Positions 1 to 28,300 of a DNA stretch of 64,000 bases are shown piece after piece. Within the stretch, counting starts at the first letter, position 1. Every line of letters starts with the position of its first letter. A program made the position numbers and the translations under genes. The stretch is taken from NCBI RefSeq assembly GCF_000150275.1, contig NW_002060962.1, positions 1-64,000 of the forward strand. The letters are read 5' to 3'. This DNA is from Trichoplax adhaerens (lineage: Eukaryota > Animalia > Placozoa). Under the pieces are notes generated by a model that made no database searches, was not told the origin of the DNA, and was given only the letters and a program-made list of their open reading frames with translations.

Positions 1-1024
1 ATAATACAAATAAGAAAAACTTTCTAAACCTCTAGATTGCAACACTTTATAATAGGTAATTATACAAGGCGAAAAGAAATTGACTACTTCCGGAGATATC
101 ATGAATAAACTTATTCTCATATAGCTAAATAGATACTTTGTGTTATAAATATGATAAACTGCAGTTTTATTTCAGATAGAATAAAATAACAGTAAAATCG
201 CTAACACTATAGTGTATTAGTGAAGACTGGCGTTACGATGGAGGGATACTCGTTTATTTACTGTCCTATAGCTTATATTAGTTAGGATTAGTTAAGGGGA
301 TGTTAATTCGACAGGGTAGTACCATGGCAGCAGTACTGTACGTCTAATTGTCTAAGCTTTACAGCGAAATATCATAGCAAGTTATATGTAAAATATATTC
401 CTACTGAAGATATTTGTGAGAATATTAATTGATTTATGGAGTAATTATAAGAGAACTTCGCAAATTTACAGATAATCTCATCAAAATTTAAAGACATCTA
501 CTGTAGCAATATATATCTAAAATAAACGTATATTCCTATAATACTATGCAAGTATATATTATCAATAGTTAGCTATTAATTACACTATCATTGATTGAAC
601 TGTGTAATATTAAATTTTTTCGTTCGACTGATTATCTTAAAGCTGTAAATTGTAAACTCTAGCTTTACTGATCGCTGTAAACTACTGTATAGAAGAGAAA
701 AATTTCAATTACAAAGTCTCTTGACCATAATCTAGCCTATTCACGTTTCAACGTAGGTAAACATCGGTGGATTGTAACGAAATGAGCAGCACTAGGTGAT
801 AAATGTAACTGCAATGGCTAGCAACGGTCCATAATGATTTTAAAATGCGGTTATAATATTCTATTCCTTAAAACTTTAATTTTGCTTGACTATAAAATAA
901 AGTTACTTGGCATCACTAACTCGACTGCAGCAAATTATGATAATAACGAACAGTTATGCGTTATTAGTTTTATGATAAGTAGTTTACTGATGTCACAGTT
1001 ATCTTCGACTACCGATAGACTTAC

Positions 1025-1245
1025 CTTACTATAGCGTAAATTCCATCAGAAAGAGCTAAATTAATAGTTAAAGCATCACTTAAGTTAAGATTATGTGCTT
1101 TTCTTCCGATAGCGTAACATAAGATTCCATTTCCAATACAGCTGAGTAGAGTAGTAATTACCAACAAGACCAAAAATACGATAGCTGTTTCTCGCGGATA
1201 GTAAAGATCGGAGTTAGATATATTTGTGTTTAGAGAAGAGTTCAT
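1025..1245 (-). CDS. Class A (rhodopsin-like) GPCR, first coding exon; remaining exons toward or beyond the window start not resolved
   Basis: ATG at 1245 gives MNSSLNTNIS (N-glycosylation sequons), a hydrophobic TM1 ending in IGNGILC (GN motif) and TM2 INLALSD (LAxxD motif), then an AG|GTAAGT donor at 1024. A possible TM3-like piece (DEIICKFAKF) lies near 400-497 but I could not join it in phase. Confidence 0.75.
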
Positions 1246-2988
1246 CTTCAAAGATATCTTATTATCGGTATTAAAATCGCAACACGAACTATCTCGTTTA
1301 ATATAATAGATGTAATAGGATTTTAAGATCGTAGCCGTCACCGAGTGGTGGAAATAGATATTTTTTCTCTCTCTTCTTTAGGATCTATTACATTGGCTTA
1401 ATATTATTTACTATTTATGACCTATCATAATTCAATATCATAAGTTGTTATAAGAATTGGAGACATGCGAAGTACTTGAAAGTAAAGAATTTAATATAAT
1501 TATTAAGTAACGTAGTTACCATTACAGTATAGCATTATTATCATTTTACACATTCAATATTCTTTTCAAAGTCGTAGGCAAATAACAATTAGTTTTAGAT
1601 GGTTTAGATATATGTAGCTGTTTCTACACAATTGTATTTTAAATTGATGTTTAGTATTAATTTATTTATTTATAATTGCCGTAATGACGCTATTGTAGTC
1701 GATGGCCAATAAAAATATTTCCTTTTCAATTTTTCATCATTGTACATAACATAGTTTCGTCCTTTACTTTATCGTTATTGTAATTAGTTAATAACGTAAA
1801 ACGAAATTATTTTATGCCTTGATAGATGATTGAAACGAGCATTAAATAAACTAAGATAATAATACCACACTAATCTTTTCATTACGAACTGAAATGAAAG
1901 AATTGATTATTTCTAATGATTACTTTTAAAAGACTGACACGTGCAAACGTCTTACTGTTTATCGTTTATTAATTATAAGATTACCCAGTTACAATTCCTA
2001 TAGTTTGTATTCTTTCCGGAAGAGAAATGGATATAAGTAATTGTATAAAATTTATTTTAGATTAAAGGTAAACGAAGGAGGTATTAGATTTGTACACAGG
2101 AAATGGAAATAAACTCTAAGATTAATTATTGATCGATTAGCTCGTAACATACATGAAAGCTGATGGAGATTATTCTTAATTATGTAGATCCTATTTAAAG
2201 GACAACTTTAATTTTACAAATTATGATTAGTCCGTCAACCTACTCAGGTCGTTAAAACTATTACCAAAATTTAAATATATAAGACTCATGATTACAGTCA
2301 CTTTCGTCACCATTGTACGTAAGGCTATTAGTAGGACGAATTGTAAACAGATATTGTAAGGTGTTACTGTAAAATTTCCCTTTATTAGTGATCTGAATAG
2401 CCAGTTAATTTTCTTATAATTATTAAACAACTTAGTTGATCCAACTTATACGTGAGATCATCTGATTTTTGGTCGCTTAAATTTATGATTAAAATTCAAA
2501 CAAGGTATGAAATCTTTACTAATATCGCTATTAAAACATTGAGCATCTATTTGACTATTTGGCGTTTAGATTGAACGCTTCTAACGGAATATTTATTATT
2601 GCTTCCTAGAAAAATAGTCTCTTAGTGAACTTTTCATAGTAGTCACCGAGTTGGCCTCAGCAAATTAGAAAAGAATTTTTTAGTATAGCAATATCAAATT
2701 TGAAACATTCTTTTTCACGAATACGATACTCTATAAATCGGTTCCAGCTTGGTACGGTAACGTAAACAGTATCACAGCTCTGGTAGATATAGTAATGTAC
2801 AACAGTATTTCCGCTACCAATATAACAATAAAACTTCGTCTAATGAATTTTAGTTTAGGCAGTATATAAATATGAGACAGGAGTTGATATCAAAATAGAA
2901 AAATATTGATTTTGCAAACTACAATCATACTTTTGCATGAGTATTGTGATCAAATTAAGGTATAATTCAGGAAAAGTTACTTCATTCC

Positions 2989-5900
2989 TTAGTTTGGCAT
3001 CACCACTATCATTGCTATATTTGATTTAAAGCTCCATACTTTGTATGTTGGATTTTGCTGAAAAATTTTAGCAGAAGTTTTGCCTGACCCAAAGTTACTA
3101 TCTATTTTTGCTTTTGCAGATGAGATAGTACTATCGGTGTATTTGGAATTGGATGTAATTGAGTCCTTTGCTTCGATTTTAACTAGTGAGTTTTTAGTAT
3201 CTTTTGTAGTTTGATGGCTATAAATGTTTACAGATTGACTTTTTTTATCAATGTCAGACAAATCATATAAGTTGTTATTCAGAAAGGAAGATTCAGCAAA
3301 CTGAATACAGGAAACGTCCAAGCAATACTTTCCAGCACCAAAAAATACGATATGGCATTCTTGTTCAATAGTTTGAGCAATTTTTAACTGATTTAAAGAG
3401 ATAAATAGAAATTAGAGCTATAATAAAATTTACGGCAGCATTATTAGGCGTTATCAAGGCCAAAAGCAGTCTTATACCTCAGGAACAACAAGGTGCTCAG
3501 TTCCAACTACCGCACATTTATCTAATAGCTGGGTATCGTAGTAACCATTTTCGTAATCTTGGTATGATTCGATCGTAATACAAAGATTTTGCAACGGTGA
3601 GCCTAAATCGTAACGATTAATTAGTTTAGTATAATACCGTAAATTAATTATCAAAGCACTCACCAGAAATGTTGGTTATGACGGCTTTCACAGATACAGT
3701 ACTTCCAACAGTAAAAGAATCTTGCACTTCACTGCTAATTGGTTTATCGTTTACATGCACATCTGTTAAAAATATAGTTATAATACATAAAGATAAATGA
3801 CGTATCGCTTTTGATAAACAACCATTAACTAACCTATTTTTACTGGAGCCAAGGTAATTCTGTCAATCATTCCTAAAGTTAAATGGTTTGAATTAAGTTG
3901 AACTATTCCGGATTTTCCGCAAGAACGCTATGTGCACACTATTAAGGATCAAACGAAAAACTTTAAAGACAATAGTACTCCATAACGGACTCATTAGTAG
4001 ATTTTTCTGTATAACTTATAGGATACAATCCGCCATCTTAATTCTATAGCATCGGAGAGCTTCTTTAAATACAACTTTTCTTTTAATAAATTTTCCTGAT
4101 TAGAAACTTTCGCTATTTCAATTTTTTCGATAGAAATCGCAACACTGCGGAAAAAAAGGCAATAAGAGCTCCTTTAAATTAAATTGCACAAATTGCAAGG
4201 TTTTTATTTACCACAAGTACCACATGTAATAGTTGGTAAACTAACCGTCTAGCTGCCCCTTTAGGAATAAGTATGTGAGTCGGTTTACCAGTTTTAGTTA
4301 CAGTCCAGTAAAATTCGATCGAGAAAGTGGTTAAGTTTTCGACATCGAACACAATTAGGCACTCATTGCAGCTAAAAAAATTCAAAAAATTACCTATTGA
4401 GCTAGTCGTAAATGGCGCAATACTTGAAATACCAAGTAAAATATATTCACACTATAGAACAATTACCTATCGTCGGATAAAACATCAAAATTTAAAATTC
4501 TTACAGAAGGTTTTATCGTAATATTAAATACAGCTTCAATTTGACGACAGTATTCATTGTGAATGATGCCTCCACTGTAAGTACATTTCAATGCGGAGGT
4601 AATTTTTTCTGTATTAACGTCGGTAACAGCTGCAATATCGTTATATGGGATATTTAATGCAATCGGTAATTTTATAGTCTTTCTCTGTTGGCATGGTAAC
4701 TTATGTTCCAGATCTTCATTACACCAATCGAATAAGGTAGCACCACCTATTACAAATATAGTAGTCGGCATGAATGTAAAGTATTAGTTTTAGTTATTAA
4801 ATCCTTTGATCAGGGCAATACAATTGTACTCACTGTTACTGCTGCTATTAACGACTTGTAGATTTAAGAAGTTCACATCGATACATGATACGTTCTCGAA
4901 AATCATGTCGAAAGGATTTCTATTGAAAAAATCTATCATTAGCCGTTCTGGTACTCTTAAACTTTTGATGGGTAAAAATTTATCTTTACCTTTCTCCAGT
5001 ATAAGTAGTTAAATTTGTAACCAATGTTTGGATTTCATTTGATGTTGTAACTACAAAACCAGGTGATAATGTGGACGAAATACGTATCAGGGGTAACGCA
5101 GGTATAACGTCAATTTCACGACGCAAGCTTTCGTTGCAGAATGTTGACGTGCATAAGCTATTTAGTCCAAAAACTTGGCTGCTGTAGCCTAAAATATGTA
5201 ATTTGCCTTTGCTACATGGAATACCAGTTAACATCATAGACACAGGCTCAGATTTTGGAGGTAGTGCAATAGCCGCCGGATGGGGATCGAAAGCAATATC
5301 ATCCACTAACAGTGTCATCTTGCTAACCTTCACTTCAAGAGGCATGGGATTAACTAGTTTTATTTCAACTCTAAGAGTTTCATTTTGAATTGTAATTGGG
5401 ATTTCATCGGTTTTTCCTTTAGTTGATCGTTTCTGTAGTGCGGAGAATATGAAGCAGTTCTGATTATCGGAATCAGTATTTGCTAACATCTTAACAGGTC
5501 GCAATTGGGTAGGAAGTGGGACAATAGTAAATTGGATAATACAGGGAAACATTGTCATTGCCATTGGTTGGCTACCGTAATTGCGATTAAAAGTAAATTG
5601 ATACGGGCTTCCAGTGATATTTTTCGACTGCATCTCAAGAAGGGCACAGTAAGTTTGTTTATCCGAATCACTCAGTGAACTATCCATAAATTGTAAAATA
5701 AAAATAAGAAGTCGGGAAGCAATAGCAGGATCATTAAGGTGTCTCGAACACATTATTAATTCCTTTAAAACATGTAACTGAAGGGCTGGCCAACCAGATC
5801 TATCCTTAGCACATAATTGGAAATCAGGATGTAAGTTATACCCTTTCAAGGCCTTTTTCATGAGTGAATATACAGCAATCCAAGGATGATTTGTAATATT

Positions 5901-8267
5901 TCTCGATAAACACTGCATTGATGCTATACGAGATATAAAAGCAGCTTTTCGGCCAAAATTAATCTTTTCATAAATATGGCTAACAAAGCAATAACGTTGA
6001 ATTTTTTGCTCTTCGCTCAATGGATAGTTGGTATATAAGATTCTCATCAGCGTTTCTGATGTCTCTACTTTTTTATCTGCAGAAGCCAAAACATTGGCTA
6101 ACTTGATATTAGCTTCTAATTCAATTAACGGTGCAACATTGATCCTGTTATAAATTTTAATTGCTTCTAGATATCTTTCAATAACGTCATTCGTTGATAA
6201 TAGGTTAGCATTCAGCGAAGGTACAGTTGCGACAGCGTTATCATCTTTGGTCGCTACAGCATTAAAAGATGGAGATCTTCTACCTTTACCTTCAGGTAAT
6301 ACAGCAGCACTCCCAGGAGTAAGGACGTAGTCTCCACCTTTTAAAAATTAGATATCTGTATTACTAATATGTTGATTTTTTATTAGTAAAGTATAAGAGA
6401 AGTAAAGTTTATAGCAGGTTACTGCATTTTCAAATATCAGCAATTGTATTATATCGAACGTTTTCAAGCAAATGAACGACTATGCGTGCACATTATGAGT
6501 TCAATTATAAAAAGTAGCAATGACTGATCTGGTAATACTATATTCTAACTTTTTATTGATAATTTGAATGGACTATATCCCAGTAGAACTTGAACTCTTA
6601 TCTGAATGCCGCAATCGCAAAAGTACTTTACTGTTGATAAAATTTGAAAGCTCAAGCTTTCATACGCTTTGGAGAAGATAGAATCATGACAGTGTATGTG
6701 TGCATGTGTAATTGCAAAAGAAAGAACGCAACTAAGTGGTCAAGATAAAGAGTATGATTGGTTGTTATTTAGTAGATATCGGTTTTAATAAAATGCAGAA
6801 TTAATAGTTCCTATACACTTGTCGAATATAATACCCGTAGAGGGTAAAAAAAAGAATACCTCTATACATATAGTATTACACTATCATAGCTAATTTAACG
6901 GGGACAGTATTTACTTTTGCATATGATGGTAGCAGCACAGATGCCTTCTAATGCGCTGGCTAGCCAGAGTAAATCATTTGCAGAGCGTAGCCCATCGACA
7001 GCAGCAGCATAGTGGCTCAAGGCATCATAGGATAAATTGGCCAGTAAACATAAATCACCGAGTCGCTTTTTATTCCTGCCAGCACATTTCTTCTTATAGC
7101 CGCTATTACATATTTGACAAAAAAAAGTTGCACGGAATAAAAAACAATCTAAGTTAAAATATACAATACTTCCTATTTATTAAATAGCTTTGAATATGTA
7201 CGTAAGAGACACAGGTGCTACGCTCGATTTTACGACAACGCAACTAAGCACTTTATCATTCAGTATAGAATAATATTTGAATTGGGTGATGGAAAGGTTA
7301 ATAAGTCGTATTAATGATATACGGTAAATGATGATAAAACAAACAATCTTCTACTACGTCGAGATCATATTACACTATCGTACTACATTATCAAGATAAT
7401 CATATTGTTATTTCTGTAATGTTGCTATCGATCAGGTAGAAGTTGACAGACTTACCTTTGATATACATCGAAAACATTTCTGTTGCTGTCCGTTCTTGTA
7501 TCATATTAAAATAAATTACATCAGTACAGTAGAATATTTGAGTATACGCGTATACCAATTGATGTCTATTGATATCATTACAGTATAAGAGAAGAGGAGG
7601 AAATCAATTGTTGACAAATGACTGATTACTATTGCGCTGCGATTGTAATTGCTAGCGTGACAGCAATGGATAACATTGGTTTGCAATAGTTTTACCTATC
7701 ATCTTGAGATCCGCTGTCATTTTCTAATGATATTTTTAACATAGTCATTTTATCAGGCTTTTCATTCAGTTTTTCGACACGTTTAGAGTCCAAGATCCAG
7801 AATAGAGATGCACCAAATTCAGGTATTGCAGTAGATAAGACATGTTGATAGTTTTGCAAATTGATGACAATCGCTTCAGTTTGATCAGGTAACGATTGGT
7901 CAGTCATAATAATGAAACGACTATCGAATAAAGTTTCAGAATATTGGGTAAGCGTATCTTGAAATTTTTGGTTTAGTTGGGCAAATTGGTCATTGGTTTT
8001 TGTTAAATCGCCTATGCAAAATAATCCTAGAACATGCTTATGCATATGCAAGGTGCCCCAAATACGACTTTCATGAGCATGAACATTTTGAACAAATTTA
8101 AGTCTAACTACACGATTGGCATTGGGTAGGCTAACACGTTGATAACGGCTACGCAACAGCGTATAAATACGTTGAAATTGTTGACGAGGAATATTGCCCA
8201 CTGGTAGAACTAAAACTAACATACATCGATGATCAAATGTCGTTTGTGAGAAGTCAATGCCTGCCAT
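2989..8267 (-). CDS. TRAPPC9: Trafficking protein particle complex subunit 9 (NIBP/Trs120), multi-exon
   Basis: Exons include 8267-7696 (MAGIDFSQTTFDHRCMLVLVLPVG...WGTLHMHKHVLGLFCIG), 7102-6915 (YKKKCAGRNKKRLGDLCLLA...SANDLLWLASALEG), 6337-4990 (FGRKAAF, GWPALQLHVLKEL, FIFSAL, NPMPLEVKV), then smaller exons to the stop at 2989. The motifs match recalled human TRAPPC9. Confidence 0.95.
3928..4026 (-). other. U12-type (minor spliceosome) GT-AG intron in TRAPPC9
   Basis: 5' site GTATCCTAT; branch site ATCCTTAAT about 14 nt upstream of the AG; splicing joins IELRWRI to RSCGKSG in frame. Confidence 0.85.
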
Positions 8268-8601
8268 GATGAGGTGATGATCGCCCTTTTCAAGGTTGAT
8301 TTGTATCTCTTGACTCGTACACCACTCCAATGATACAGTAATATCAAGAAAATAACATGCTGGAAAGCCAATTTACCTTGACTTTGACTGAATTAAACAT
8401 GAATGACAAGATTTCAATGTTATCAAATCTACATAAGCTGTACTAGAGCGGCTAACAGCTACAACGGGTAGACAAGAATTACTGCTCAATTGGTAATAAT
8501 CTCGCAGGCGGATGATTTGACGCTGGTGATTTCGATCCTTGTAGTACCGTGTGGTAGTAGTGTGTAGTATGTGTGGAGTACAGTAGTAGGCTTGTACCTG
8601 A

Positions 8602-9033
8602 GTGCTGTGAAGATGTTGTCGGCTATAGAAGTTTTCTAATACTGTATCTCTATGGGAACTGGACAGTACTGGTACTGTGAAGAATCAAGATATTGTCGGC
8701 CATAGAAGTGCGCATACTCTGTATGGGAACTGGATAGTACTGGTACTGGTACTGGTTCTACTGGTACTGTAAAGAATCAAGATATTGTCGGCCATAGAAG
8801 TGCGCATACTCTGTATGGGAATTGGACAGTACCAGTACCAATACCAGTACCAGTACAGTGCTGTGAAGAATCAAGATGTTGTCGGCCATAGAAGTTTTCT
8901 AATACTCTCTATGGGAACTGGACAGTACTAATACTAGTACCAGTACCAGTACCAGTACAGTAGAGTGCTGTGAAGAATCAAGATATTGTCGGCCATAGAA
9001 GTTTTCTAATACTCTCTATATGGGAACTGGACA
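8602..9033. repeat. Five-copy minisatellite with a core of about 60 nt separated by short GTACTG/CCAGTA linkers
   Basis: Core TGTGAAGAATCAAGATATTGTCGGCCATAGAAG...TATGGGAACTGGACAGTAC recurs near 8602, 8676, 8768, 8862 and 8969. Confidence 0.92.
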
Positions 9034-9035
9034 GT

Positions 9036-9460
9036 AGTACTGTGGACGTTAGCCAGTTTTAATGAACGAACGTACGAACGTCCAATTTGAACGTCGGACG
9101 TTCATTGAACGTACCAACGTACACAGTGTACAGTGTTAACACTACAGTATATACATAGTGTACACTGTACAGTACGGTATAAGACTACTGTAAACTATAC
9201 ACTGTACTGTACGTAACAGCGTACAGTATACTGTAGTCATGACTAGTACTGTGGACGTTAGCCAGTTTTAATGAACGAACGTACAGTACAGTACACAGTG
9301 TACAGTGTTAACACTACAGTATATACATAGTGTACACTGTACTGAAAGTGTTTGTAAAAGACGTTTGTACTACTGTACTGTACTGTATAAGAAAGTCTAT
9401 GGCTTACAGTACTGTACTGTACACCAACGGTCTCTAGCCTAGTCTGTACTGTACTGTACA
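9036..9460. repeat. Duplicated blocks and TACAG/CTGTA low-complexity sequence between TRAPPC9 and the AIG1-like cluster
   Basis: TAGTACTGTGGACGTTAGCCAGTTTTAATGAACGAACGTAC at about 9036 and 9245; GTACACAGTGTACAGTGTTAACACTACAGTATATACATAGTGTACACTGTAC at about 9119 and 9291. Confidence 0.9.
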
Positions 9461-9929
9461 CTAATGTAGATAGAGATAATCCGGCAGCACTGGCACTCGA
9501 TTGATATACTGTCAAGCAGTTCATAACGATGGTATCAACCCCCCCCCCCGCCTATTACGCTTTGGTCAGGAGCCAACGTGGCTTGCAGTCGCTAGTTGAC
9601 AGTACAGTACTATAGGCTTTAAAGGCGGAAACACTGCAATGACGTAGCACTACCATAGCTGATCAAAGCTGAAATTAGAAACGAGGTTTTTGGACCATTG
9701 GTTTGATTATTTTGCGTGTGTTCGAGAATTGATGGTATTCAAACTATTTCAAAGTGCAATGCGTTTCGCAATCCTATGCGTAGAGTAGATGTGAATACAC
9801 TGTACTGGAGCGATCACAGGCCACACCACTAATACAGTATACTGTACTTGTACAATATTGGATAATTTCATAAATAATCAAGCCATCCAAACCGGAAAAG
9901 CCATAACAGCATCTTGAAGCAGAAATAGG

Positions 9930-10076
9930 ATGAGAAATAGGTTATGCTTGTGCGTTTACGCCAGTGGAGCGATTGTGCTTGGAATGGGCATTCAGTATGA
10001 TTGGAGATTTCTCTATAATCTACCGATATACAGTGGTGTTGCTGGGAGATGGAAATACATGACAACTTTGAATTTC
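9930..10076 (+). CDS. AIG1/ADTRP-like gene A, candidate alternative first exon 1a
   Basis: 147 nt from ATG, ending GRWKYMTTLNF|GTAAGT (phase 0); encodes TM1 plus the family KY/FxT motif. Confidence 0.85.
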
Positions 10077-10742
10077 GTAAGTTTCAACAGCTCAAGTTTC
10101 CTACCGCTAGTGATAGATTCCAACTCATTCATTCATTCATTCATTAACCTCCTAGTGAAGCAGTACCGCACTGCATTATTAATTCAATTCAATGGTCAAT
10201 TAGGAGCAACCGCAAGTACAGTAGTAAGATTCATTCATGAATTATCACAACTCTATTGCAAATGGAATAGAGCATTCTTAATATTTTGGCGGTGCTATAT
10301 AGTAGTATAGTTAGTATATTGTAAACGCTTCCCAATTTCGATGGTAAGTTATGAAATAAAAAAATGTATAATGACGTATCATTCATTCTCTTTTCATTTT
10401 CTACTAGTTTATTTTGAGATTTACAAGCGTTTACAATATGCTTCCTCAACCACATGATGATGACGTCAATTTCCTCTAAAAAAAAATGGAAAGTGAAGTC
10501 AGGAACGGGGAAGTAGCCTGTGTACAGTACAGTACTGTACACTGTACAGTGTACAGACTGTGCGACAGCTTCACCCGCTCTCCTATCCCACCCCACCCCC
10601 CGGCGTACATAATATACTGTGCTGTACAGTGGATACTGGGTAGTGTACAGTATACACCAAACTCCACTGACTCCGTGCAGCATATTTAGCCTTATTACTT
10701 GTATCATAGCCGATCGATCTATAGAACAGGGAAGCAAGCACG

Positions 10743-10889
10743 ATGAGAAATAGTTTACTTTTATGCTTTTACGCCTTTATGGCAGTTGTGTTTGGAATTA
10801 CGGCAAAGTATGATTGGGATAATCTCTGTGATATGCCGTCTCGCAGAGGATATGCTAAACGATGGAAGTATCTGACTGTATGGAATTTC
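10743..10889 (+). CDS. AIG1/ADTRP-like gene A, candidate alternative first exon 1b
   Basis: 147 nt from ATG, ending KRWKYLTVWNF|GTAAGT (phase 0). Confidence 0.87.
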
Positions 10890-11828
10890 GTAAGTACCCG
10901 CGATACTGTAGGCAACTCGACAGCGTGCCAATCCTCAATTTGCCATGTTGATATCCGTGACAGTTCATTCCTTTTTTTATACTTCTTCTTTCCGCTTCCG
11001 GTATGCGGCTATCCATAAACTATCAATAAATCCTTGATCCATAAAGCTCCAAAGTTTGCTTTGTTACTTTATGCTAACATTCCCAATTGATCCCGAATTG
11101 AAAAAAACTGAAATGATGACAAGATTATTGCTCATGGCTCGATTGCTTGATACTACCACTTGTTGATTTGAATTGCTCAAGTTACCATTAAAGTGTACAA
11201 TGTTAATTGACTGTGATGCGTACACACTACTGCGCAAGACTACTTTGACGTCATCAATCCTCTCGATCCCATTTAGCATGGGTCATTCTTTCTTCCTTTT
11301 TAGTACTCCCACTACATCGTGCCCAAACAATACTGTACTCTATAGGGCACAGTAAGCGAGTATGGTCTAGTTGAGGCTGCACTAAGCCAAAATCGGACAT
11401 CTACCTTGAACCATACTGTCTTGGTTGTCCTCATATCGAGCCACGTGGTATCGTCGGCAAGAGGTCACCCACACTGACATGACCCCTATGCCTTGACCCA
11501 AACTATCCATTTTTGCGGGACCTGCAAATATGGCAGTCTGAATGGTTGGCACGGTACTATTGTACCGTCGAGTCGAGTCTTTCTCCTATCCACAAATAAC
11601 TCCTTTGATGCATTTATTATTGGAATGATTTTATTAGAATCATTACTGCAATCCTTTAACCCAAAGTATCTTGATATCAATTGAATTGATTGAGAATCAC
11701 CGAAGCTTGTTGATAATCTTTGACCTCCGTACCGAACCTTCTTGGTGTTTTAGCCGGTATCGAGTTACTTCCAAGTAGATTAAGAATCATTTAGTGGACA
11801 GTGAAGCCTGATTGAATAATCGATTGTA

Positions 11829-14113
11829 ATGGAGAGAGTAGTTTGGTTTTTATTATATCTAGTCTTTGCAAGTGTATACGCTTATTCGTCGTATTCTTCT
11901 CGTGCATTTATGGCGGATCTGCCTATCGCTAAAGGATATGGTGGCTTGTACAAATTTTTAACTTCATGGAATTTGGTAGGTTGTGCATCAATGCAATACA
12001 GGACAGTATAGCCTATCTTGGCAATAGATTATATAGTGGAAATGCGTTTGTAAATTACTCGACTGTACTGTATAAACAGTTCAAGAAACAACCTCATTAT
12101 GCCTGCATGCCTGGGGTGCTAGTGCTACGTAGGCTCTATTACAATTTCATTGATGATGGATTGTTGTTATTTTTACGGCCACATGCACTGATGGAAGACA
12201 ACCAATACCATCAAGGAGTTGATTTGTATGGAGATAGACTAATATTTTGATTGACACCAAATGATAGGAGATAAAGATTAGATTAGCATCGAGTTTAAAA
12301 TGATCTTGATCTATTTTTGATACGTTGCTAAAAGCTAGAATGAGCTGCAATATCGAGTATAGGATATGCGGATATCAATTGACTTCGATTACAAATGACA
12401 ATGCGTAGTCATCATTCATAACTGGATTGACGTACTATTGCACTTTCTATTCACCTCTGTCAATTTTCCTGTAGTAGTATTTGCAATTACTGTATCTGAT
12501 ACTATGACAGTTGAAACCAAACAGGGTAAAAATCCTATTATATCAAATTCACTGTCCAATATTAACATATGCGATTATGGACGATTATTATCCACGTTAG
12601 ATGCATCGTTGTCTTACAAGTAAGGTACAGAATGATTCATTCGCTTGTAATTAATACCAACCTAAGGTAACGCACTCAGAGTTCGATAATACATTGAAAT
12701 GGTACAGTAAATTTAAGATAGAAGATAATGGCTTGATTGCATTCTGTCGTAATCAGGATCAAAGGACAACGTCAATTATTATTAAATTATGGCAACAAGT
12801 CATTAGGATAATAATAATAAAATGGCACCTTGCTAGAGGAGTATTTGCATTCTTGCAAACTTCTAACTTTATAATTATTCCATTGTATGTCTAAGCATAT
12901 TCTTTTCTTCTTTAGCATTTACAAACACTGTATTACTATTATGCCCTGCTGGCTACTATGTACGTGCTCATCAGTAAAGCTGAAAGAAGTATTTTATTAA
13001 CAATAAGAGATTATATATTTGGTGCTCTGGTTTTTCCGATTGGCATGGTAATTTCTTTTAAATACAACCAATTGTAATGCTATATACATCGTAGTTCTTG
13101 CCAATAAATAAATAGCGTATAGATTTATTAAAGTACTAAAAATTGCCTTAGTACTTTATTTCATATACGTGTATACGAAGTAATTCATGATCTGTAGTTT
13201 CACAAGTCTGGACGTAATTGAAATGCTTATTTTCTGTTATATCTTGGATAGTACGTTGGAGTGATATTTTGGGCCATGTATAACTTCGACCGTGAAGTAA
13301 TTTATCCTCGGTCATTGGATCAATATGTTCCAGTGGTGATCAATCATGTCTGGGTAAAATAATCGACACAAATACTGAGATTTTAATGTTACAGTTACAG
13401 TATTAATGTTCGATTATATCGTATGTGATATAGTGACATTCTTAACGCTACATACCTTTCAACCTGTGAGATTTCTTAGAAAATAAATGTATTCGACTTT
13501 GCTTAGTGTTTGGCGTTAGTATAGATTAGTAGTTTTATTTTATTTTCGATACATGTGAGTAAAGTGTGATAGATCAATTGTGATACTTATTGAGTTTATT
13601 TGCTTACATATAGCATACTGCTGTGTTAGTATTCCCTATAATTGAATCACTGCTTGTAAGACATGACAAGTTTCCAAGTCGTTCAAAAGGTTATGTAGGA
13701 TTATTCATATTCAAGCTATTTTATTTGATATGGTGAGTATGCCTTTTGCTACTATTGCGCAACGTATAGATGTAGTTATAAATAGAACGTCTTATGTTGG
13801 ATAGGGTTTTCTATATTGGATTATATCATAATCTATGGATATATCCGTTTATGCGAGTGATGAACAACACTCAATTTACAATATTTATACTGGTGTCAAT
13901 TATTATCGATGCTGCTTGTTTCGAGGTTGGATACCGTCTAAATAGGGTAAAGAATCCTGGCAATGAAGGTAGGACTCGTTACTGCAGTACTAGTAGACAT
14001 CAAGTGTCATGAGCGTCTTATAGTTATAAAGTTAAAATTGTGTCCGTTAACAGTATAATTTATCATCTTCATAAATAACAGGATCCACTGCAGAAAAGGT
14101 TAAGGGACAATAA
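11829..14113 (+). CDS. AIG1/ADTRP (FAR-17a) family membrane threonine hydrolase, gene A (exon 1c plus shared body)
   Basis: Exons 11829-11975 (GGLYKFLTSWNL), 12916-13047 (HLQTLYY...RDYIFGALVFPIGM), 13252-13353 (FWAMYNFDREVIYP...INHVW), 13614-13732 (HTAV...), 13805-13968 (WIYPFM), 14082-14113 (STAEKVKGQ*). All introns are GT-AG and in frame. Confidence 0.93.
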
Positions 14114-15223
14114 CACCTTGCGATCAAGTACGATTTAGCATCCGGTATTGGCCGCAAGAATGATCCATTCTCACCCATTGAGCATATGACTATGTTAAAT
14201 TATATGTAATTGATGATGACAGTGACTGTGTTAATAGATAATTTTATAATAAAAGTTAACTAAATTTACTATAAAGGCAATGAACAAATTGTTTTATTAC
14301 ATGAATATTCTGAAAGTTTCAAACTTATTATCGCCATGTATTATTTAGATGCATTTTATCAAACTTACTATTGTCAGGTCCATTCTTGATTGAATTTTGT
14401 CAAATCGCCATTATATCCATTTGTTCAGTGTACGTAGAATAGCTAGGCTCTTGCTTATTTAGATTATTCCATCATGACAATTACGTCATGTGTCAAGAGT
14501 AGGTCAGTACGTACAAAAACATTCAAGGCTATTTCTTAACCAACAACATAATTCGTATTTATTGGATACATTCTTGTAATAACCTTGATAGTGGAATAGG
14601 TCAATTTGTAATGCCAGCGCTTTCAATTCTACGATGGGATGATTGACATCATCAGCGAATCGTGTAATTATAGCATTTTAGACAGGTACATTTGTCATGG
14701 CTTTTTGATAAAGTTTCGCTATGCATAATATTCATGGGCTTGTAAACGTTTATCATGTACGCATAAATTAATAAAATCAGTAAAAATAAACCTAGGTGTA
14801 CGCGAATTATGAACGTATATGAAAGCCACAATTTCCGTGCTTATTAGTGGGAAATATTTACTAGGAGTAATTTCATCCCTCATCATTGTCGGAATTCTGA
14901 ATGTCTGTATGTCCGTATTTAGTTTCTACAATAGACAGCCATTAGAGTAACGATTGGACAGCTGTAGAGTGTTTGTAAGCTAGTGAGTAAAGGGTTAGAA
15001 AACGTAGCTCTACTTTTACATCTCCAACTTCTGCAAGTAGTACTAAGCATTTTATAAGTTGTTGTCGACTTTATTGAATAAATCGACACTCCAATTCTAC
15101 ATTATAGGCAAACTAATTTACTTATCATTTATTTGTAGGGAATAAGCAGTTGTTATAGCCTCAAATATTCGTCTTGTACGCACATTTATTCACCTATCTT
15201 ACTACATAAATCAAATTGAAACG

Positions 15224-17310
15224 ATGGCAAACCCTAACTCTCAATCGCCACTGTTATTTCATCTGATTTGTTTCACTCTATATTTTGGTGCTTTATTGTA
15301 TGATATGCTATTTCTTCCTACCTTTGGACTCCGAAAGATTTATGGGCACAGGTGGAAATTTTTAACAATTTGGTGTTTGGTAAGGTTACATTAAATTTTT
15401 GATGTATATAGGTACTTTTAAACTGTATCATAATAACGTGTAACATTTCGACAGCATAAGAACGATTAAAGTTTGCTAGTGTGATATTATGGTTATAATG
15501 AAAATAAACTGCATTATCTGCATTGCTCGCCATAACGAGTCGCTGCATTATCGTACGTCGTATTTTTGGATGTATTTTTGACGATATGATATAATGAGTC
15601 GATGCAAGAGTCACGCTTTATCCTGGAAGAAGCTGATGATCTCCATTAGTACCTCAATCAATTCAATCAAAAGCAGATTACTGTTCAGTATTTTTGTATA
15701 TTGTTGCAAACATAGGATTACATGTTGTACATCAATTAAAATTTTAATTGCATAAGCAGAATCTATTGTTACTTAAGAAACGCTTCAATATTCTCCACTA
15801 CGATAAGTCGAATGTAAAATCTGTCATTTTTGGTAGCAGGGAAAGTAATTTTTATCCTGCACTGCTTCTAAATTAGGTAGAATAATCCTGATTGCCGTTA
15901 CTACGCTAAAATTGAGCACTTTATTGTTTCTAGTTGATCCAAATACTGTATAACTTCATCGCTGTCCTGTCCGCTGTCACCCCAATATTGACGAACAGGG
16001 TGAAATCCTTGAAAGACTTTTTATTTGCTTCACTGGCATTCCCTTTCGGAATGGTAAGTGTGACTTATTTTAAGTCTTAATTTATAATTGCTTTTATCAC
16101 ATTTTGTGTAGCTATTTACGTAGACTACTAGATATGCTTTCGGTAGATACAATCTTTATGAGTATATGCATTAGCAAATCTTATCTGAAAATCAGAATAT
16201 AAGAATAGCTACGATCATGATATTTGTATCTATAATCTCTCCTTTATATCATCAAAGCTCGGATTATGTAGAAAGAGTTGTACGATTATCATTGCTACAT
16301 GTTGTAGGATTACAGTATACAGACTCCAGAAATTTTAGCTGTTACGTACGTTTCTCAAACAGTTATAAGATATTCTACGGTATGCATAGGAGCTGGTGAT
16401 GGAATTATGATAAACACCATAAATAAAAATGAAATATAAAATATGTGTAGTCATCTACTTTAATCATCTACTAGCAGAAAATTGCAACTAAGAAGCTTTT
16501 AAATAATTGCAATTCTAGCTCGTTTCGTCCATGTTTTGGATATTATACTGCTTGGAACCAGACTTCGTTTATCCTTTGGCTGAGAGAAAAATTGTCCCTG
16601 TAGCGTTGAATCATATTTGGGTAAGAATAATTTGAGTGTACTCTGTAATCATTCGTATATAAGATATACCTCTGATACTCGAAAAATATCCATACAATTT
16701 CACTAATGAATATTTTATATTTAATAGCATACCTTAGTATTTATTAGTCCTATGCTCGATGTACTACTTTATGAGCATAAATATCCTTCAAGGATCTATG
16801 GGCACTTTTGCTTAGCAACTTTTGCATTACTCTATATTGGATGGTGAGCAATTATCAAATGTGATATAGGTTTTTATAACCTCAATGCATTTTAAATGAT
16901 GCCATTATTCAATAGTCTAAGGTTTTAACATCAGCTTTTATATTTTATATTTACAGCATCTTTTGGATAGCTCATGTTGCTAAAGTATGGATATACGGAG
17001 TATTAGAGACTATGTCTGCGCCAATGGTCGTTGTTTTCTGTTTAGTGCTCGTTTTAGTAACGATTCTATTATATGAATTTGGATACTGGCTGGAACGAAG
17101 GAAGAAACGGGTATTGGTAGTCTTTACGACATGTCATCAGTATTAATAATACAATTAATGTAGATACCTATGGTTAAGTAGTTTTTCATAGCAAAATATA
17201 GCGAAAATTATTGGTCATTTTCGAGTAATTGAGCATCGTCATCACTACAAATTATATGATCTTGAATAGTTTTATTTTTTATATGATTACAGACGCTAAA
17301 GTTAAATTAG
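15224..17310 (+). CDS. AIG1/ADTRP family gene B
   Basis: Exons 15224-15379 (YGHRWKFLTIWCL), 15934-16053 (KDFLFASLAFPFGM), 16519-16620 (FWILY...LNHIW), 16728-16843 (HTLV...HKYP), 16957 to about 17110 (WIYGVL), and a probable last exon 17293-17310 (TLKLN*). The C-terminus is uncertain. Confidence 0.92.
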
Positions 17311-20802: not shown

Positions 20803-22524
20803 ATGAGTCTATTATCATTATCCTTCCACTCAACTTTATTGTTCCTGTATACTTATGCAACATGGTACGATCTCAACTTTATACCCCTATTAGGAGTTAA
20901 GAAAATGTATGCAGGCAGATGGAAATACTTGACTCAATGGTGCATGGTAATAAAGTTAGCTTCTCTTTATAAACTAAGTAAATGGACGCAATCCATTCGA
21001 TTACATGCGTAGTAATTTGATTTAAACTGATCAGAGAAGGATGATCTACCTTAACAATAATTCTTTAAATATGATGACGTTTCGGCATTAAAATATAATT
21101 TTTTAATATCGATTTAAGATCTAACTTGGATAAAAGTGCAACTTGTCTAGGCTGTAGCTTATTTGGTCTAAAACTTCTTGATTATCATATTGTAGGTCAT
21201 ACAACTAAACTATCAAGCTCTCTGCGTTATAAGTTATCTCTATTCGAACAGCAAGAATATTACTAAATTCAAGAAAATAAGAGAGTATGTATTTTCTGTT
21301 CTGGCTTTCCCTGTCAGCATTGTAAGTCAATGGCATTTTATTACTACTTGAGAGCTGAAAGAATAAGGTTTTACTACTATCTTAATTGATTGTCAATTTA
21401 CTACAATGACCTAACTGGATAGTTAGCATACTAGGCAACAGCATAAGCTAGGGTATTCAAGCAGTAGCACATTATAACTTAAAAGTAGTGGTTAAGAGTC
21501 CAAGTGTTGATAGCTTCGTACCAATAGATCTGCTTTTACATGATGCTTAAAAAAATAGTTTTAAGGCTCCATCAAATCAGAAGGTGAAAAGTTATTAACT
21601 TCGATACTTTAGATTTAGTTATGATCAACCTATCTGTATCCATTTCAGTATAATATAAAAGTACCTTGAGCTTAATACTTTAACTTAATTTTTTCAACGC
21701 TATTTTTAACACAGATCATATTATAGCTCTACAAACATACATTTACACGTATATATTATAATCGATTGATTGTAGAGGTAAATATATGACAGTACTGAAC
21801 TATTATTGTACTCGAATATGTAGCTATTGCATTCTCTTATAGAGTATTTTAAAGCTGCTGATAATTCATATTAGCAAATTATATGTTAAAAATTTAATTT
21901 GCTCTGTGACTTATTTTGTAGATAGTGACTGCTACCTTTTGGATTTTATATATAAAAAACCCGAATAACGTCCGAGAAAAAATGTACGAAAATATTATAC
22001 CACCTCACATTAATCATTTATTTGTAAGTATGAATGATTATAGTAGATAAAATTATTTTATTTTCTGTTACCCTTGCATTAATTACGCATAATATTTCAT
22101 AATTGTTAGCATACCGTCATCGCTATTGCCAATATTCTCGATTTATTAATGCACCACCACGATTATCCTGTAAGAAGAAACAGCTATGTTGGGATGGCTT
22201 TGTTTTCGCTATCATTTATAACCTGGTTAGTGCTGAAGACTTTAGTCGTAATAATATATATATCTATACGAGTATGATATCTACTTGGTGTCATCTACAA
22301 ATCACAATACAATATATACATCTACTATCTATTTCTGTAGGACAATATGGATCAAATATAGAGCTAATATTTGGGCCTATAAAATATTGCATAAGATCCC
22401 GACACCAATTTTACCAGCTTTCTTTATGAGCTTTCTTTTTATGCATTTCGGGCTCTACGAACTTGAATTATGGGTAAAATCAAAGCAGACAGCAACTAAT
22501 AAGCTGAAAAATAAAATGAACTAG
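20803..22524 (+). CDS. AIG1/ADTRP family gene C
   Basis: Exons 20803-20946 (YAGRWKYLTQWCM), 21196-21321 (REYVFSVLAFPVSI), 21922-22023 (FWILY...INHLF), 22110-22225 (HTVI...HDYP), 22341-22524 (WAYKIL...KNKMN*). The first four intron phases match genes A and B. Confidence 0.93.
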
Positions 22525-23066: not shown

Positions 23067-23314
23067 NNNNNNNNNNNNNNNNNNNNNNNNNNNNNNNNNN
23101 NNNNNNNNNNNNNNNNNNNNNNNNNNNNNNNNNNNNNNNNNNNNNNNNNNNNNNNNNNNNNNNNNNNNNNNNNNNNNNNNNNNNNNNNNNNNNNNNNNNN
23201 NNNNNNNNNNNNNNNNNNNNNNNNNNNNNNNNNNNNNNNNNNNNNNNNNNNNNNNNNNNNNNNNNNNNNNNNNNNNNNNNNNNNNNNNNNNNNNNNNNNN
23301 NNNNNNNNNNNNNN
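23067..23314. other. Assembly gap (248 N)
   Basis: Run of N. Confidence 1.
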
Positions 23315-25323: not shown

Positions 25324-28300
25324 TTAACCAGAATAAAATTGATGATGAAAAATTGGCAAATGCATAATTAAAATTGAAATTTTAAAGCTAATTTTACTTA
25401 CACTTTTAGTATAGATTTCGATACAATCTTCAACGGAAACATTGTTATTGCGCGTACCACATTGGCATGATTTGTAAAAGCATGGGGTAATGCATTGTCG
25501 GCCATCTTTGCAAAGAGTTGCTTTTTGATTACTATCGCAATTAAATTGACAGTTACAGTAATCGACTTGTTGAACGGGATCTTCATCAGCAGGATCACAT
25601 TCACCATATTTAACAAATTGTAGAGACGGATTTAAACATTTTTCTTTGTAGTAATCGCACCAATTTGGAAAATTTTGATTACCAAATTGATTCTTCCCAC
25701 AAATTGGATGGCTATGACGGAAGGCATCACATTTAATATCACGGCATTTAATTGGGCATTTTCCATGACTGACAATTTTAACTGGTTTAGCATACGATGG
25801 GATACTTTGAACAACATCAAAATAGCATTGATTGGCGTAAGTTATATTATCATCGCCACATAGCATCGTTGAATTTGTTGCATTAGCAATATTACAGTCG
25901 GTATAGCGCCGACAAGTTGAATAATCAACACTTGGTGTTGGGCTGTTGGTGGTATTNNNNNNNNNNNNNNNNNNNNNNNNNNNNNNNNNNNNNNNNNNNN
26001 NNNNNNGTAAGATTACGATAAGTTACACCATCAGAAGCGCATATAACATCAGATTTTGCATTCTTGAATGCTTCTGCTTTTTTCAAACATCTTTGACTAA
26101 TAGTACATTGTTGAGTATCGTTTAATTCTTTCACTTTCTTATTGTGATGATTGGCGGCATAACAACGAGCAAAACGAAGTTGGCATCGATTAAGATAGAG
26201 AACACCATCGCTACCGCAGATTGGTTCATCTTTAGTACCACAATTATTTGGACACTTTACTAAGCACTTTCCCGTATATTTAATCGATAATGCTGCTTCT
26301 TGTTTATTTTTACTATTAATTTTCTTCTTACATTGTGCAATTGTAAAATAGCATAGATTAGAATAAGTTTTTCCATCACTAGCGCAAATTGGTTGCGATT
26401 GATCACTCTTACATTTGGATTCATGGCCACATAGAAGAGTATCGTGATCACATTGACCATTATACATTTTGGTAATATCAATCTTTTTCAATTTTGCTTG
26501 ACATACAGCTGTCTGGAATTGGCATTGATTGGAATAAGTTTGGCCGTTACTAGCACATATGGGTTGATTATCTTTCGTTGAATTTGATGATTTACAGCTT
26601 TGCTGGCAAGCTTGTTGACAAGTACCTTTACGATAAGCGATATTAATGACATAACGGGAAGTACAATTAGCTAATCGAATAAAGCAGATATTGCTATAGG
26701 TTTGGCCGTTACTACCACAGAGTGGATTCACTTTATTGACTTTACATCGATAGAAACTCTTACAAAGAACGCTAGGTAATGGAATTTTGGTCGCTAAACC
26801 ATTTGAAGGTTTAGTACTTGCTATAGTCGCTATTGGCAAATTAGTATTAATAGGCTGTGTTGCTGGCACGGTACTTGGCAATATCGTGGTTGGCATGGTG
26901 CTTGGCAATATCGTTGTTGGATTGATTAATGGCTTACAAAAACTTTTACGTACAACCTTTAATTTCGACTTTTTTAATTTACTTGCTTTACACTTTGCAA
27001 TGATAAATTGGCATTGTGAGAAATACCATTTTCCATCACTAGCACAAATTTGCTTGGATTGATAATATTCTTCCTTATTACATTTGACCGAGCAAATAGG
27101 GTCTAAGCATCGATAGTGTTTATCCAATTGCAATGCATTATTATACGTTAATAATTGGCGTCTTCTTTCATATTGATAAACACATAAATTATAATAAAGT
27201 CTACCATCGTTGCCACAAACTGGTTTTTTATCCGTTAGATCGCAGCCAGGTGCGCATCTTCCTTGATAAGCAATTTTCATTTTTTTCTTCCATTTAGGTA
27301 AATTGCGATTATGAACACACGATGCAATTTTATAAGCACAAAAATTGACAAAAGTCTCACCTGTGGTTGCACAAATGGGTGCAAAAGTTGTATTGCTTTG
27401 ACAATTATATTTAGTCTGGCAACGCTTGACTTTCGTATAGACTGGATGATGGCAAGTTTTAGTATAATAATTAACGCGCAATTTGGTTTTTTTATCCCTT
27501 ATTTCAGCTGCACATTTATCAATTTTAAAATTACATCGATTAATATACATAGTGCCATCGCTAGCACATACTAAGGCGCCTTTAGTACCACACTTACGCC
27601 AGCAGTTTTTATACGAAGTTAATGGAGCTTCAGGACATGCAAAATGATATTTGATAGCATTGGTTATATTCCATCCAAATCGGCAATAAATTGCGTTCAT
27701 TATGCATCGATTGACATAATTGATATTTTCGCTAGAGCATACTGGTTGATAGGTATTTTCACATATTGGGCATTTGGAAGGCGGCGAAAAAGGTTGGGCA
27801 TCATGGAGTAGATATTGTTTTGGTTTAACTTTAGATAGTGGTTGCGTTGGTTTAGCGGCAAGAGGATGAAATTTTTCTTGCGGAAGGATATCATTCTCCT
27901 CCTCTTCTTCCTCATCATCATCATCATCGTCATCATCGTCGTCGATACTCTCGTTATTAGAATTGTTTTGGTTGATATTATTACTGCTATCCTTTAATCC
28001 ATCCGATTCAAGAGTGTTATCATAATTCATAGCATGGCATCGAGTTAAATAAATCTTAGGCCTATCGGGTGAATTGGATCGTGAACAATTTTCCATTCTC
28101 ATAAAACATGAATTAATATAAACCCGTTGATCAGAGCCACAAACTGGATCGTAGGATACTCGACAAGATTTTGGACACTGATAATTAATCTCATTAACTC
28201 TTTCTAATTGACTTGTATTACAACTATGCCAATGTTGAATAGTCGATAATGATAAAGTGGATGGATGTTGGCGACTACCATTCCTACAAAACCATTTTTT

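Follow-up and report, generated by a model that had tools for sequence, protein, structure and literature searches.

A Trichoplax adhaerens gene of the AIG1/ADTRP family with three likely alternative first coding exons and one common body

How many proteins can be encoded by a single gene when three candidate first exons lie in front of one gene body? This question is raised by a locus of the placozoan Trichoplax adhaerens, positions 9930 to 14113 of a 64,000-nucleotide stretch (assembly GCF_000150275.1, contig NW_002060962.1, positions 1 to 64,000, forward strand). The whole stretch was analysed and is called the window here, and the locus is called gene A. The original prediction, made from the letters of the stretch, held that three interchangeable first exons of an AIG1/ADTRP-type hydrolase are joined to common exons. 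On the evidence set out below, gene A likely possesses three alternative first coding exons, paralogues of one another, which are spliced separately to one exon 2. Three mRNAs would then specify membrane proteins of 231 residues that differ in residues 1–49 only. The variable residues would comprise a first transmembrane stretch (TM1) and the motif [WY]K[YF][LM]T, whose Thr is the presumed nucleophile, and the constant part would provide the NHVWH His motif and the remaining domain. The first exons in question are the following.

9930..10076, + strand: exon 1a, alternative first coding exon, 147 nt, 49 codons, WKYMT, donor GTAAGT
10743..10889, + strand: exon 1b, alternative first coding exon, 147 nt, 49 codons, WKYLT, donor GTAAGT
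11829..11975, + strand: exon 1c, alternative first coding exon, 147 nt, 49 codons, YKFLT, donor GTAGGT

All three exons start with ATG, contain no internal stop and end in phase 0. An in-frame stop lies 4–7 codons 5' of each ATG (a TGA, 5 codons upstream, in the case of 1a), and 1a, 1b and 1c can therefore only be first coding exons. The coordinates predicted for three 147-nt, ATG-initiated, stop-free, phase-0 exons proved to be exact. The noted motifs were found again, as was the identity of 25/49 residues between 1a and 1b; exon 1c is indeed more distant, with 13/49 residues shared with each of the other two. The donors had been called perfect GTAAGT sites, which is true of 1a and 1b and not of 1c (GTAGGT). 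A stop-free frame of 48 codons is expected by chance alone at about 4% in the composition of the window, and chance does not yield three paralogous first exons of equal length. Exon 1a encodes the N-terminus, the hydrophobic TM1 segment and WKYMT with the presumed nucleophile Thr45. In each first exon, a hydrophobic stretch of 17 residues (mean Kyte-Doolittle value 1.8–2.4) is located within residues 4–21 and plausibly corresponds to TM1.

The body to which these exons would be joined is made up of five coding segments.

12916..13047, + strand: exon 2, 132 nt, common acceptor for 1a, 1b and 1c; PF04750 positions 45–86
13252..13353, + strand: exon 3, 102 nt, ends ...NHVW; PF04750 positions 88–119, 28.5 bits
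13614..13732, + strand: exon 4, 119 nt, opens with the codon for the second NHVWH His (His128); PF04750 positions 121–158
13805..13968, + strand: exon 5, 164 nt; PF04750 positions 160–205; 100% match to residues 168–221 of protein P0001 (see below)
14082..14113, + strand: coding part of exon 6, stop TAA at 14111–14113

Preceded by ...tttag, exon 2 begins at 12916 and continues the frame of 1a, 1b and 1c alike; any first exon together with exons 2–6 makes 231 codons. In the 3' untranslated region, transcript contigs continue to at least 14400. The NHVW|H motif (N124-H125-V126-W127-H128) is divided across the boundary of exons 3 and 4. Three further statements of the original prediction are thus borne out: the first exon 2 lies at 12916, the NHxxH motif straddles the shared exons 3 and 4, and homologues of exons 2–5 are absent between the first exons, since none was detected between 9930 and 12915 by tblastn at E<0.05.

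Whether the first exons are used in this way was examined in public data. Four public runs (X1, X4, X5 and X7) from four studies were mapped to 9600–14400, all of them in the form of assembled contigs. X7, labelled organism B, is recorded as RNA, and X1, X4 and X5 were only guessed to be RNA. The following splice joints were found.

10076>12916: 1a to exon 2, runs X4 and X5, GT..AG
10889>12916: 1b to exon 2, runs X4 and X5, GT..AG
11975>12916: 1c to exon 2, runs X7, X4 and X5, GT..AG
13047>13252, 13353>13614, 13732>13805 and 13968>14082: body joints, runs X7, X4 and X5, GT..AG

The joints between the first exons and exon 2 are exact matches with canonical splice sites and recur across studies. 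The junctions from 1a, 1b and 1c to 12916, to which the original prediction had pointed as a check, were thus present in two to three independent studies, and the joining of three first exons to a common body is supported at the transcript level. Run X1 lacks splice joints and extends through the introns without a break, as DNA would, and it was used as a control. The first-exon contigs extend 21–30 letters into exon 2, below the 31-letter rule that was applied for "bridging". Such a reach is expected of short-word (about 31-letter) contigs in which three paths converge on one exon. Joints of 1a to 1b, 1a to 1c or 1b to 1c were not found at the most sensitive setting, in data that consist of contigs and not of single molecules. 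Within the intron that separates 1c from exon 2, X7, X1 and X4 agree in lacking 3 nt (12161) and in having a 13-nt insertion (12198) relative to the window, whose allele is the rarer one at both places in the mapped runs.

The same layout is found in Trichoplax sp. H2. The H2 locus (NOWV01000179.1), which was assembled separately, is colinear with the window at 98.9% identity over 13.7 kb. Its exon 1a is intact, with I33T as the sole change, and the 1b and 1c proteins are identical to those of the window. The recorded H2 protein RDD38397.1 ("Androgen-induced gene 1 protein [Trichoplax sp. H2]"), retrieved with exon 5 and referred to as P0001, is identical to 1c plus exons 2–6 and is the lone isoform in the annotation. 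In H2, exons 1a and 1b lie unannotated upstream of the RDD38397.1 model. Besides this protein, no other recorded protein sharing the body of gene A was found, and a search of exon 5 against 1.84 billion representative proteins matched the H2 protein and one metagenome open reading frame of 48 amino acids only.

The assignment of gene A to a family rests on its domain. AIG1 and ADTRP are atypical Thr/His integral-membrane hydrolases that cleave FAHFAs, esters formed between a fatty acid and a hydroxy fatty acid. When searched singly, exons 2–5 match the Pfam domain PF04750 (Far-17a_AIG1) in colinear order. P0001 scores 139.8 bits against PF04750 (cut-off 24.5), with residues 7–213 on profile positions 3–205 of 206. 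The match of P0001 starts at profile position 3, and the first exon is therefore integral to the domain. The first exons alone gave no match to Pfam, for which they are too short, and membership rests on the full-length P0001. As in vertebrate AIG1 and ADTRP, a PF04750 domain and a length of about 230 amino acids are present, and the multiple hydrophobic helices of the family, six in a multi-pass topology, may be shared as well. A one-to-one orthologue in vertebrates is lacking for the placozoan genes. Invertebrate expansions of the AIG family are phylum-specific in a published phylogeny (PMC8394805), for which splice variants were dropped and in which first exons are not a topic.

When six first exons were aligned (1a, 1b, 1c, those of the tandem paralogues B and C, and that of a metagenomic relative, L004), only M1, K42 and T45 were invariant. 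The catalytic pair published for the family consists of a Thr (T43 of AIG1, T47 of ADTRP) and a His (H134 and H131, respectively), both of them conserved (PMC8123165). Thr45 of Trichoplax lies in a WK[YF]LT-type motif near T43/T47, and NHxxH at 124–128 lies near H134/H131; Thr45 and the NHVWH His residues are presumed to be the published catalytic Thr and His, an equivalence drawn by motif and position. The NH.W sequence and the following H are also present in gene B and in L004. As a lead only, we take His128, the second His and the first codon of exon 4, to be the catalytic one. An AlphaFold model of P0001 from a single sequence is mostly helical and unreliable (predicted local distance difference test score 50, predicted template modelling score 0.26), and is unusable for judging the proximity of Thr and His. 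A PDB sequence search returned no solved structure of a relative, AIG1 and ADTRP included.

Three Far-17a/AIG1-family genes stand in tandem in Trichoplax, and gene A leads the series. Each of the two others has a single first exon.

15224..17104, + strand: gene B, tandem paralogue, single first exon 15224–15379, body reaching at least 17104
20803..22220, + strand: gene C, tandem paralogue, single first exon 20803–20946, body reaching at least 22220

In the H2 annotation, gene B encodes a PF04750 protein of 251 amino acids and gene C one of 223. Exon 3 of gene C was not matched by tblastn with the exons of gene A. A first-exon profile run over the whole 105.6-Mb assembly matched the five first exons of the cluster and one allelic scrap, and the first-exon family thus appears to be restricted to this cluster at the sensitivity of a profile search. 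The scrap, contig C644 of the same assembly, was considered as a sixth first exon and rejected; it is a 1.9-kb allelic copy of 8172–10001 that ends in 1a. It breaks off at codon 25 of 1a, the codon that is a stop in X7. In gene C, a short frame at 21774–21803 resembles the motif end of exon 1a, with 7/10 residues identical. It was rejected as a further first exon and taken as a chance match, being a weak tblastn hit with neither start nor donor context. A tandem repeat array with a unit of about 90–120 nt is located at 8600–9040, between TRAPPC9 (minus strand in H2) and 1a, and its copy number varies among the window, the H2 assembly and contig C644.

The metagenome scaffold L004 (ENA, positions 1–3425, sample ERZ23499115) and a second one, L005, show 59–68% identity over exons 2–5. 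L004 has a GC content of 32% and belongs to a placozoan-like relative, in which orthologues of gene A exons 2–5 and of the gene B first exon stand in the same order. L005 is identical to L004 over 2039 nt, and both begin at the same base inside exon 2. Scans of metagenome contigs with exon 3 and exon 5 alignments yielded no relatives. Homologue searches returned P0001 itself only for P0001 and nothing for the first-exon alignment; the length window and word index of these searches make such blanks uninformative on absence.

Are the three first exons maintained, or are they only persisting? The nucleotide similarity of 1a and 1b is limited to the exon (Smith-Waterman z 16.6), and their 400-nt flanks are at or near the level of shuffled sequence (z 3.1 upstream and 0.3 downstream). 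The flanks are essentially unalignable, which points to an old duplication. Despite the lost similarity of the flanks, 1a and 1b have retained the same length, ATG, frame and donor. In simulations of neutral substitution, the share of trials in which ATG, donor and open frame survived together was about 8% with 26 substitutions and about 1% with 52. The probability of zero indels is 0.009 or less at the local non-coding indel-to-substitution ratio. Between the window (H1) and H2, differences are found at 1/441 sites of the first exons and 1/549 sites of the body exons; the non-coding DNA of gene A differs at 36/3719 sites and by 13 indels. The contrast of coding with non-coding DNA gives p = 0.0009 for all coding sequence and p = 0.06 for the first exons alone. 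It is concluded that all three first exons were under long-term constraint.

The choice among the exons would fall to promoters if each had a start site of its own, as in UGT1A, and a promoter for each first exon is hinted at by several features. In an X5 contig, position 10712, located 31 nt 5' of the 1b ATG, is immediately preceded by adapter-like letters. The letters are presumably Illumina adapter, and they hint at an RNA 5' end at 10712 for 1b. The X4 contig carrying 1c (11224–11975) begins at 11224. A palindrome, TGACGTCA, which we take to be CRE-like (resembling a cAMP response element), occurs at two sites.

10461..10468, no strand assigned: TGACGTCA palindrome, 282 nt 5' of the 1b ATG
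11246..11253, no strand assigned: second TGACGTCA palindrome, 583 nt 5' of the 1c ATG, about 22 nt into the X4 contig, counted from its 5' end

These are the only two TGACGTCA sites in the window, one upstream of 1b and one upstream of 1c. The count is weak alone, as two sites were reached in 11/100 shuffles, and the placement is the notable part; the palindrome is hinted at as a possible promoter element. Upstream of 1a, TGACGTAG is found at 9641–9648, 289 nt 5' of the ATG. The region also contains GTACAGT/ACTGTAC tracts, with 16 of the 53 copies in the window at 9001–9500, 5' of 1a, and seven just before 1b (10521–10556). No such tracts stand before 1c, gene B or gene C. In the DNA-like run X1, the bin 10405–10565 reaches a depth of about 12,000, which indicates a very abundant dispersed motif.

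Several observations weigh against three separately started and maintained first exons. The RNA evidence comes entirely from assembled contigs, in which starts, strand and whole molecules are not visible. Run X7 carries the 1c junction only, together with one unspliced contig over 9662–11251, and it has 10003 G>A in exon 1a, which turns TGG into TAG (W25*); the codon is intact in H2. The W25* allele and the lone 1c junction mean, therefore, that there are strains or conditions in which 1a and 1b go unused or are not needed, and some lineages may be polymorphic for 1a or able to dispense with it. The ratio of nonsynonymous to synonymous change (dN/dS) between 1a and 1b is about 0.55, a value that, with only 29 synonymous sites, does not fall significantly below 1 (Fisher p = 0.13). 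The earlier argument for selection and against decay is accordingly upheld by the kept length and frame beside unalignable flanks, and not by dN/dS. H1 and H2 are too close to speak for deep conservation, and the sole distant orthologue found, L004, breaks off inside exon 2 and is silent on the first exons. With regard to the starts, an X5 contig (10860–11975) runs from the end of 1b into 1c as far as the 1c donor, and some RNA containing 1c may lack a promoter start of its own. The leaders implied by the contigs hold five upstream ATGs for 1a and eight for 1c.

How else could the locus be explained? One possibility is that complete bodies after 1a and 1b were collapsed or lost in the assembly. 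The window does contain N gaps, at 23067–23314 and 25957–26006, though both are outside gene A. Contigs of other runs bridge the 1a–1b interval and the interval from 1b through 1c nearly as far as exon 2 in one piece and without a gene body (X7 9662–11251; X1 10587–12867; X5 10860–11975; X4 and X5 11946–12944). The separately made H2 assembly is colinear, the spliced joints place 1a and 1b RNA directly onto exon 2 at 12916, and first exons sharing about half of their residues would escape collapse by an assembler. The probability of such an artefact is therefore negligible, and the collapse against which the original prediction had warned is excluded by the spanning contigs and the H2 layout. 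A different matter is whether only the 1c form is functional, with 1a and 1b being the first exons that remain from earlier tandem copies after deletion of the bodies. Their promoters would still be active and their donors good, splicing to exon 2 would occur by default, and the products would not be needed. The tandem gene family at the locus makes copies with lost bodies plausible. The identity of 1c to 1a and 1b (27%) is comparable to that of the gene B and gene C first exons (20–33%), as fits former separate genes, and the W25* allele in a run that also lacks the 1a and 1b junctions, as well as a dN/dS not significantly below 1, point the same way. Against this stand the common length, ATG, frame, donor and K42/T45 of 1a and 1b, retained when the similarity of their flanks is essentially gone, the first exons being as little changed between H1 and H2 as the body exons, and the junction contigs of 1a and 1b in two independent studies, beside the 1c junction. 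We consider it unlikely that 1a and 1b are mere leftovers. Even with an origin as separate genes, they now operate as alternative first exons, and the array may derive in part from tandem gene copies that lost their bodies, not from exon duplication only.

The remaining alternative concerns the mechanism. One upstream promoter, or two, could give a long transcript through 1a–1c, in which the isoform is set by the choice of donor. This would be alternative 5' splice-site selection, and the analogy with UGT1A and the protocadherins would fail on mechanism. The unspliced X7 contig over 9662–11251, another X7 contig over 11360–11975 and the single X5 contig from the 3' end of 1b to the 1c donor are what such transcripts would leave. 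Contigs have no strand, though, and the continuous X7 cover could equally be pre-mRNA or antisense RNA. The contigs of X4 and X5 show no continuous exon-level cover of the 1a–1b intron, and the adapter-like letters before 10712 and the X4 contig start at 11224 also speak for starts further downstream. In a transcript starting 5' of 1a, moreover, the 1a ATG comes first and its frame ends in the retained intron, so that 1b and 1c could hardly be translated; separate starts are therefore favoured on functional grounds. Donor choice within one long transcript is judged to be rather improbable, and three first exons, each spliced on its own to exon 2, remain the preferred account of gene A.

This account has well-known parallels. 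UGT1A has variable first exons and shared exons 2–5, and its first exon encodes the whole substrate-binding domain of about 280 residues. Clustered protocadherins have variable exons with their own promoters and constant exons. The likeness of gene A to UGT1A lies in the tandem paralogous first coding exons, each separately spliced to a common exon 2, and in the division of an enzyme into one part encoded by the variable exon and the rest encoded by constant exons. In contrast to UGT1A, gene A has no more than three variable exons, each 147 nt long (49 residues), and the presumed nucleophile lies within the variable part. With the protocadherins it shares the logic of a variable first exon and a constant body; unlike them, it gives no sign of stochastic promoter choice, conserved promoter elements or selection by enhancers, its array is much smaller, and its product is a presumed enzyme and not an adhesion receptor. 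The comparison drawn at the outset with UGT1A and protocadherin clusters is hence sound for the tandem first-exon array and its direct splicing to exon 2, and weakest with respect to separate promoters. A full-text search for "Trichoplax" with "alternative first exon" found no paper, and no earlier description was found of a first-exon array carrying the nucleophile in the AIG1/ADTRP family. What is new is an unannotated, transcript-supported case in a family for which no earlier description was found; the architecture itself is known.

For Trichoplax, the immediate consequence is that the public gene model misses two of the three coding starts, and that two predicted protein isoforms are unrecorded. 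The first 49 residues are kept in three versions, 27–51% identical, on one body, with Lys42 and Thr45 in all of them. This pattern seems to mark Lys42 and Thr45 as essential and to leave the rest of TM1 and loop 1 free to vary. A variable-first-exon design, not a new kind of system, would be at work in an early-branching animal with few cell types. All three proteins are probably made, and the isoforms may be active hydrolases that differ in substrate range, location or cell type. It is conceivable, and is offered here tentatively, that the cassettes form a small enzyme-diversifying system, in which cell types or conditions pick a promoter and thereby the TM1-nucleophile module that is joined to the His-bearing body. 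Functional divergence of the isoforms is an attractive hypothesis. If it is true, Trichoplax would possess lipid hydrolases that differ in substrate range or in their place in the membrane, and in gene A the exchange of a catalytic-nucleophile segment via alternative first exons would be seen for the first time. The locus would then also represent a natural experiment on the residues of TM1 and loop 1 that set the specificity of AIG1 and ADTRP.

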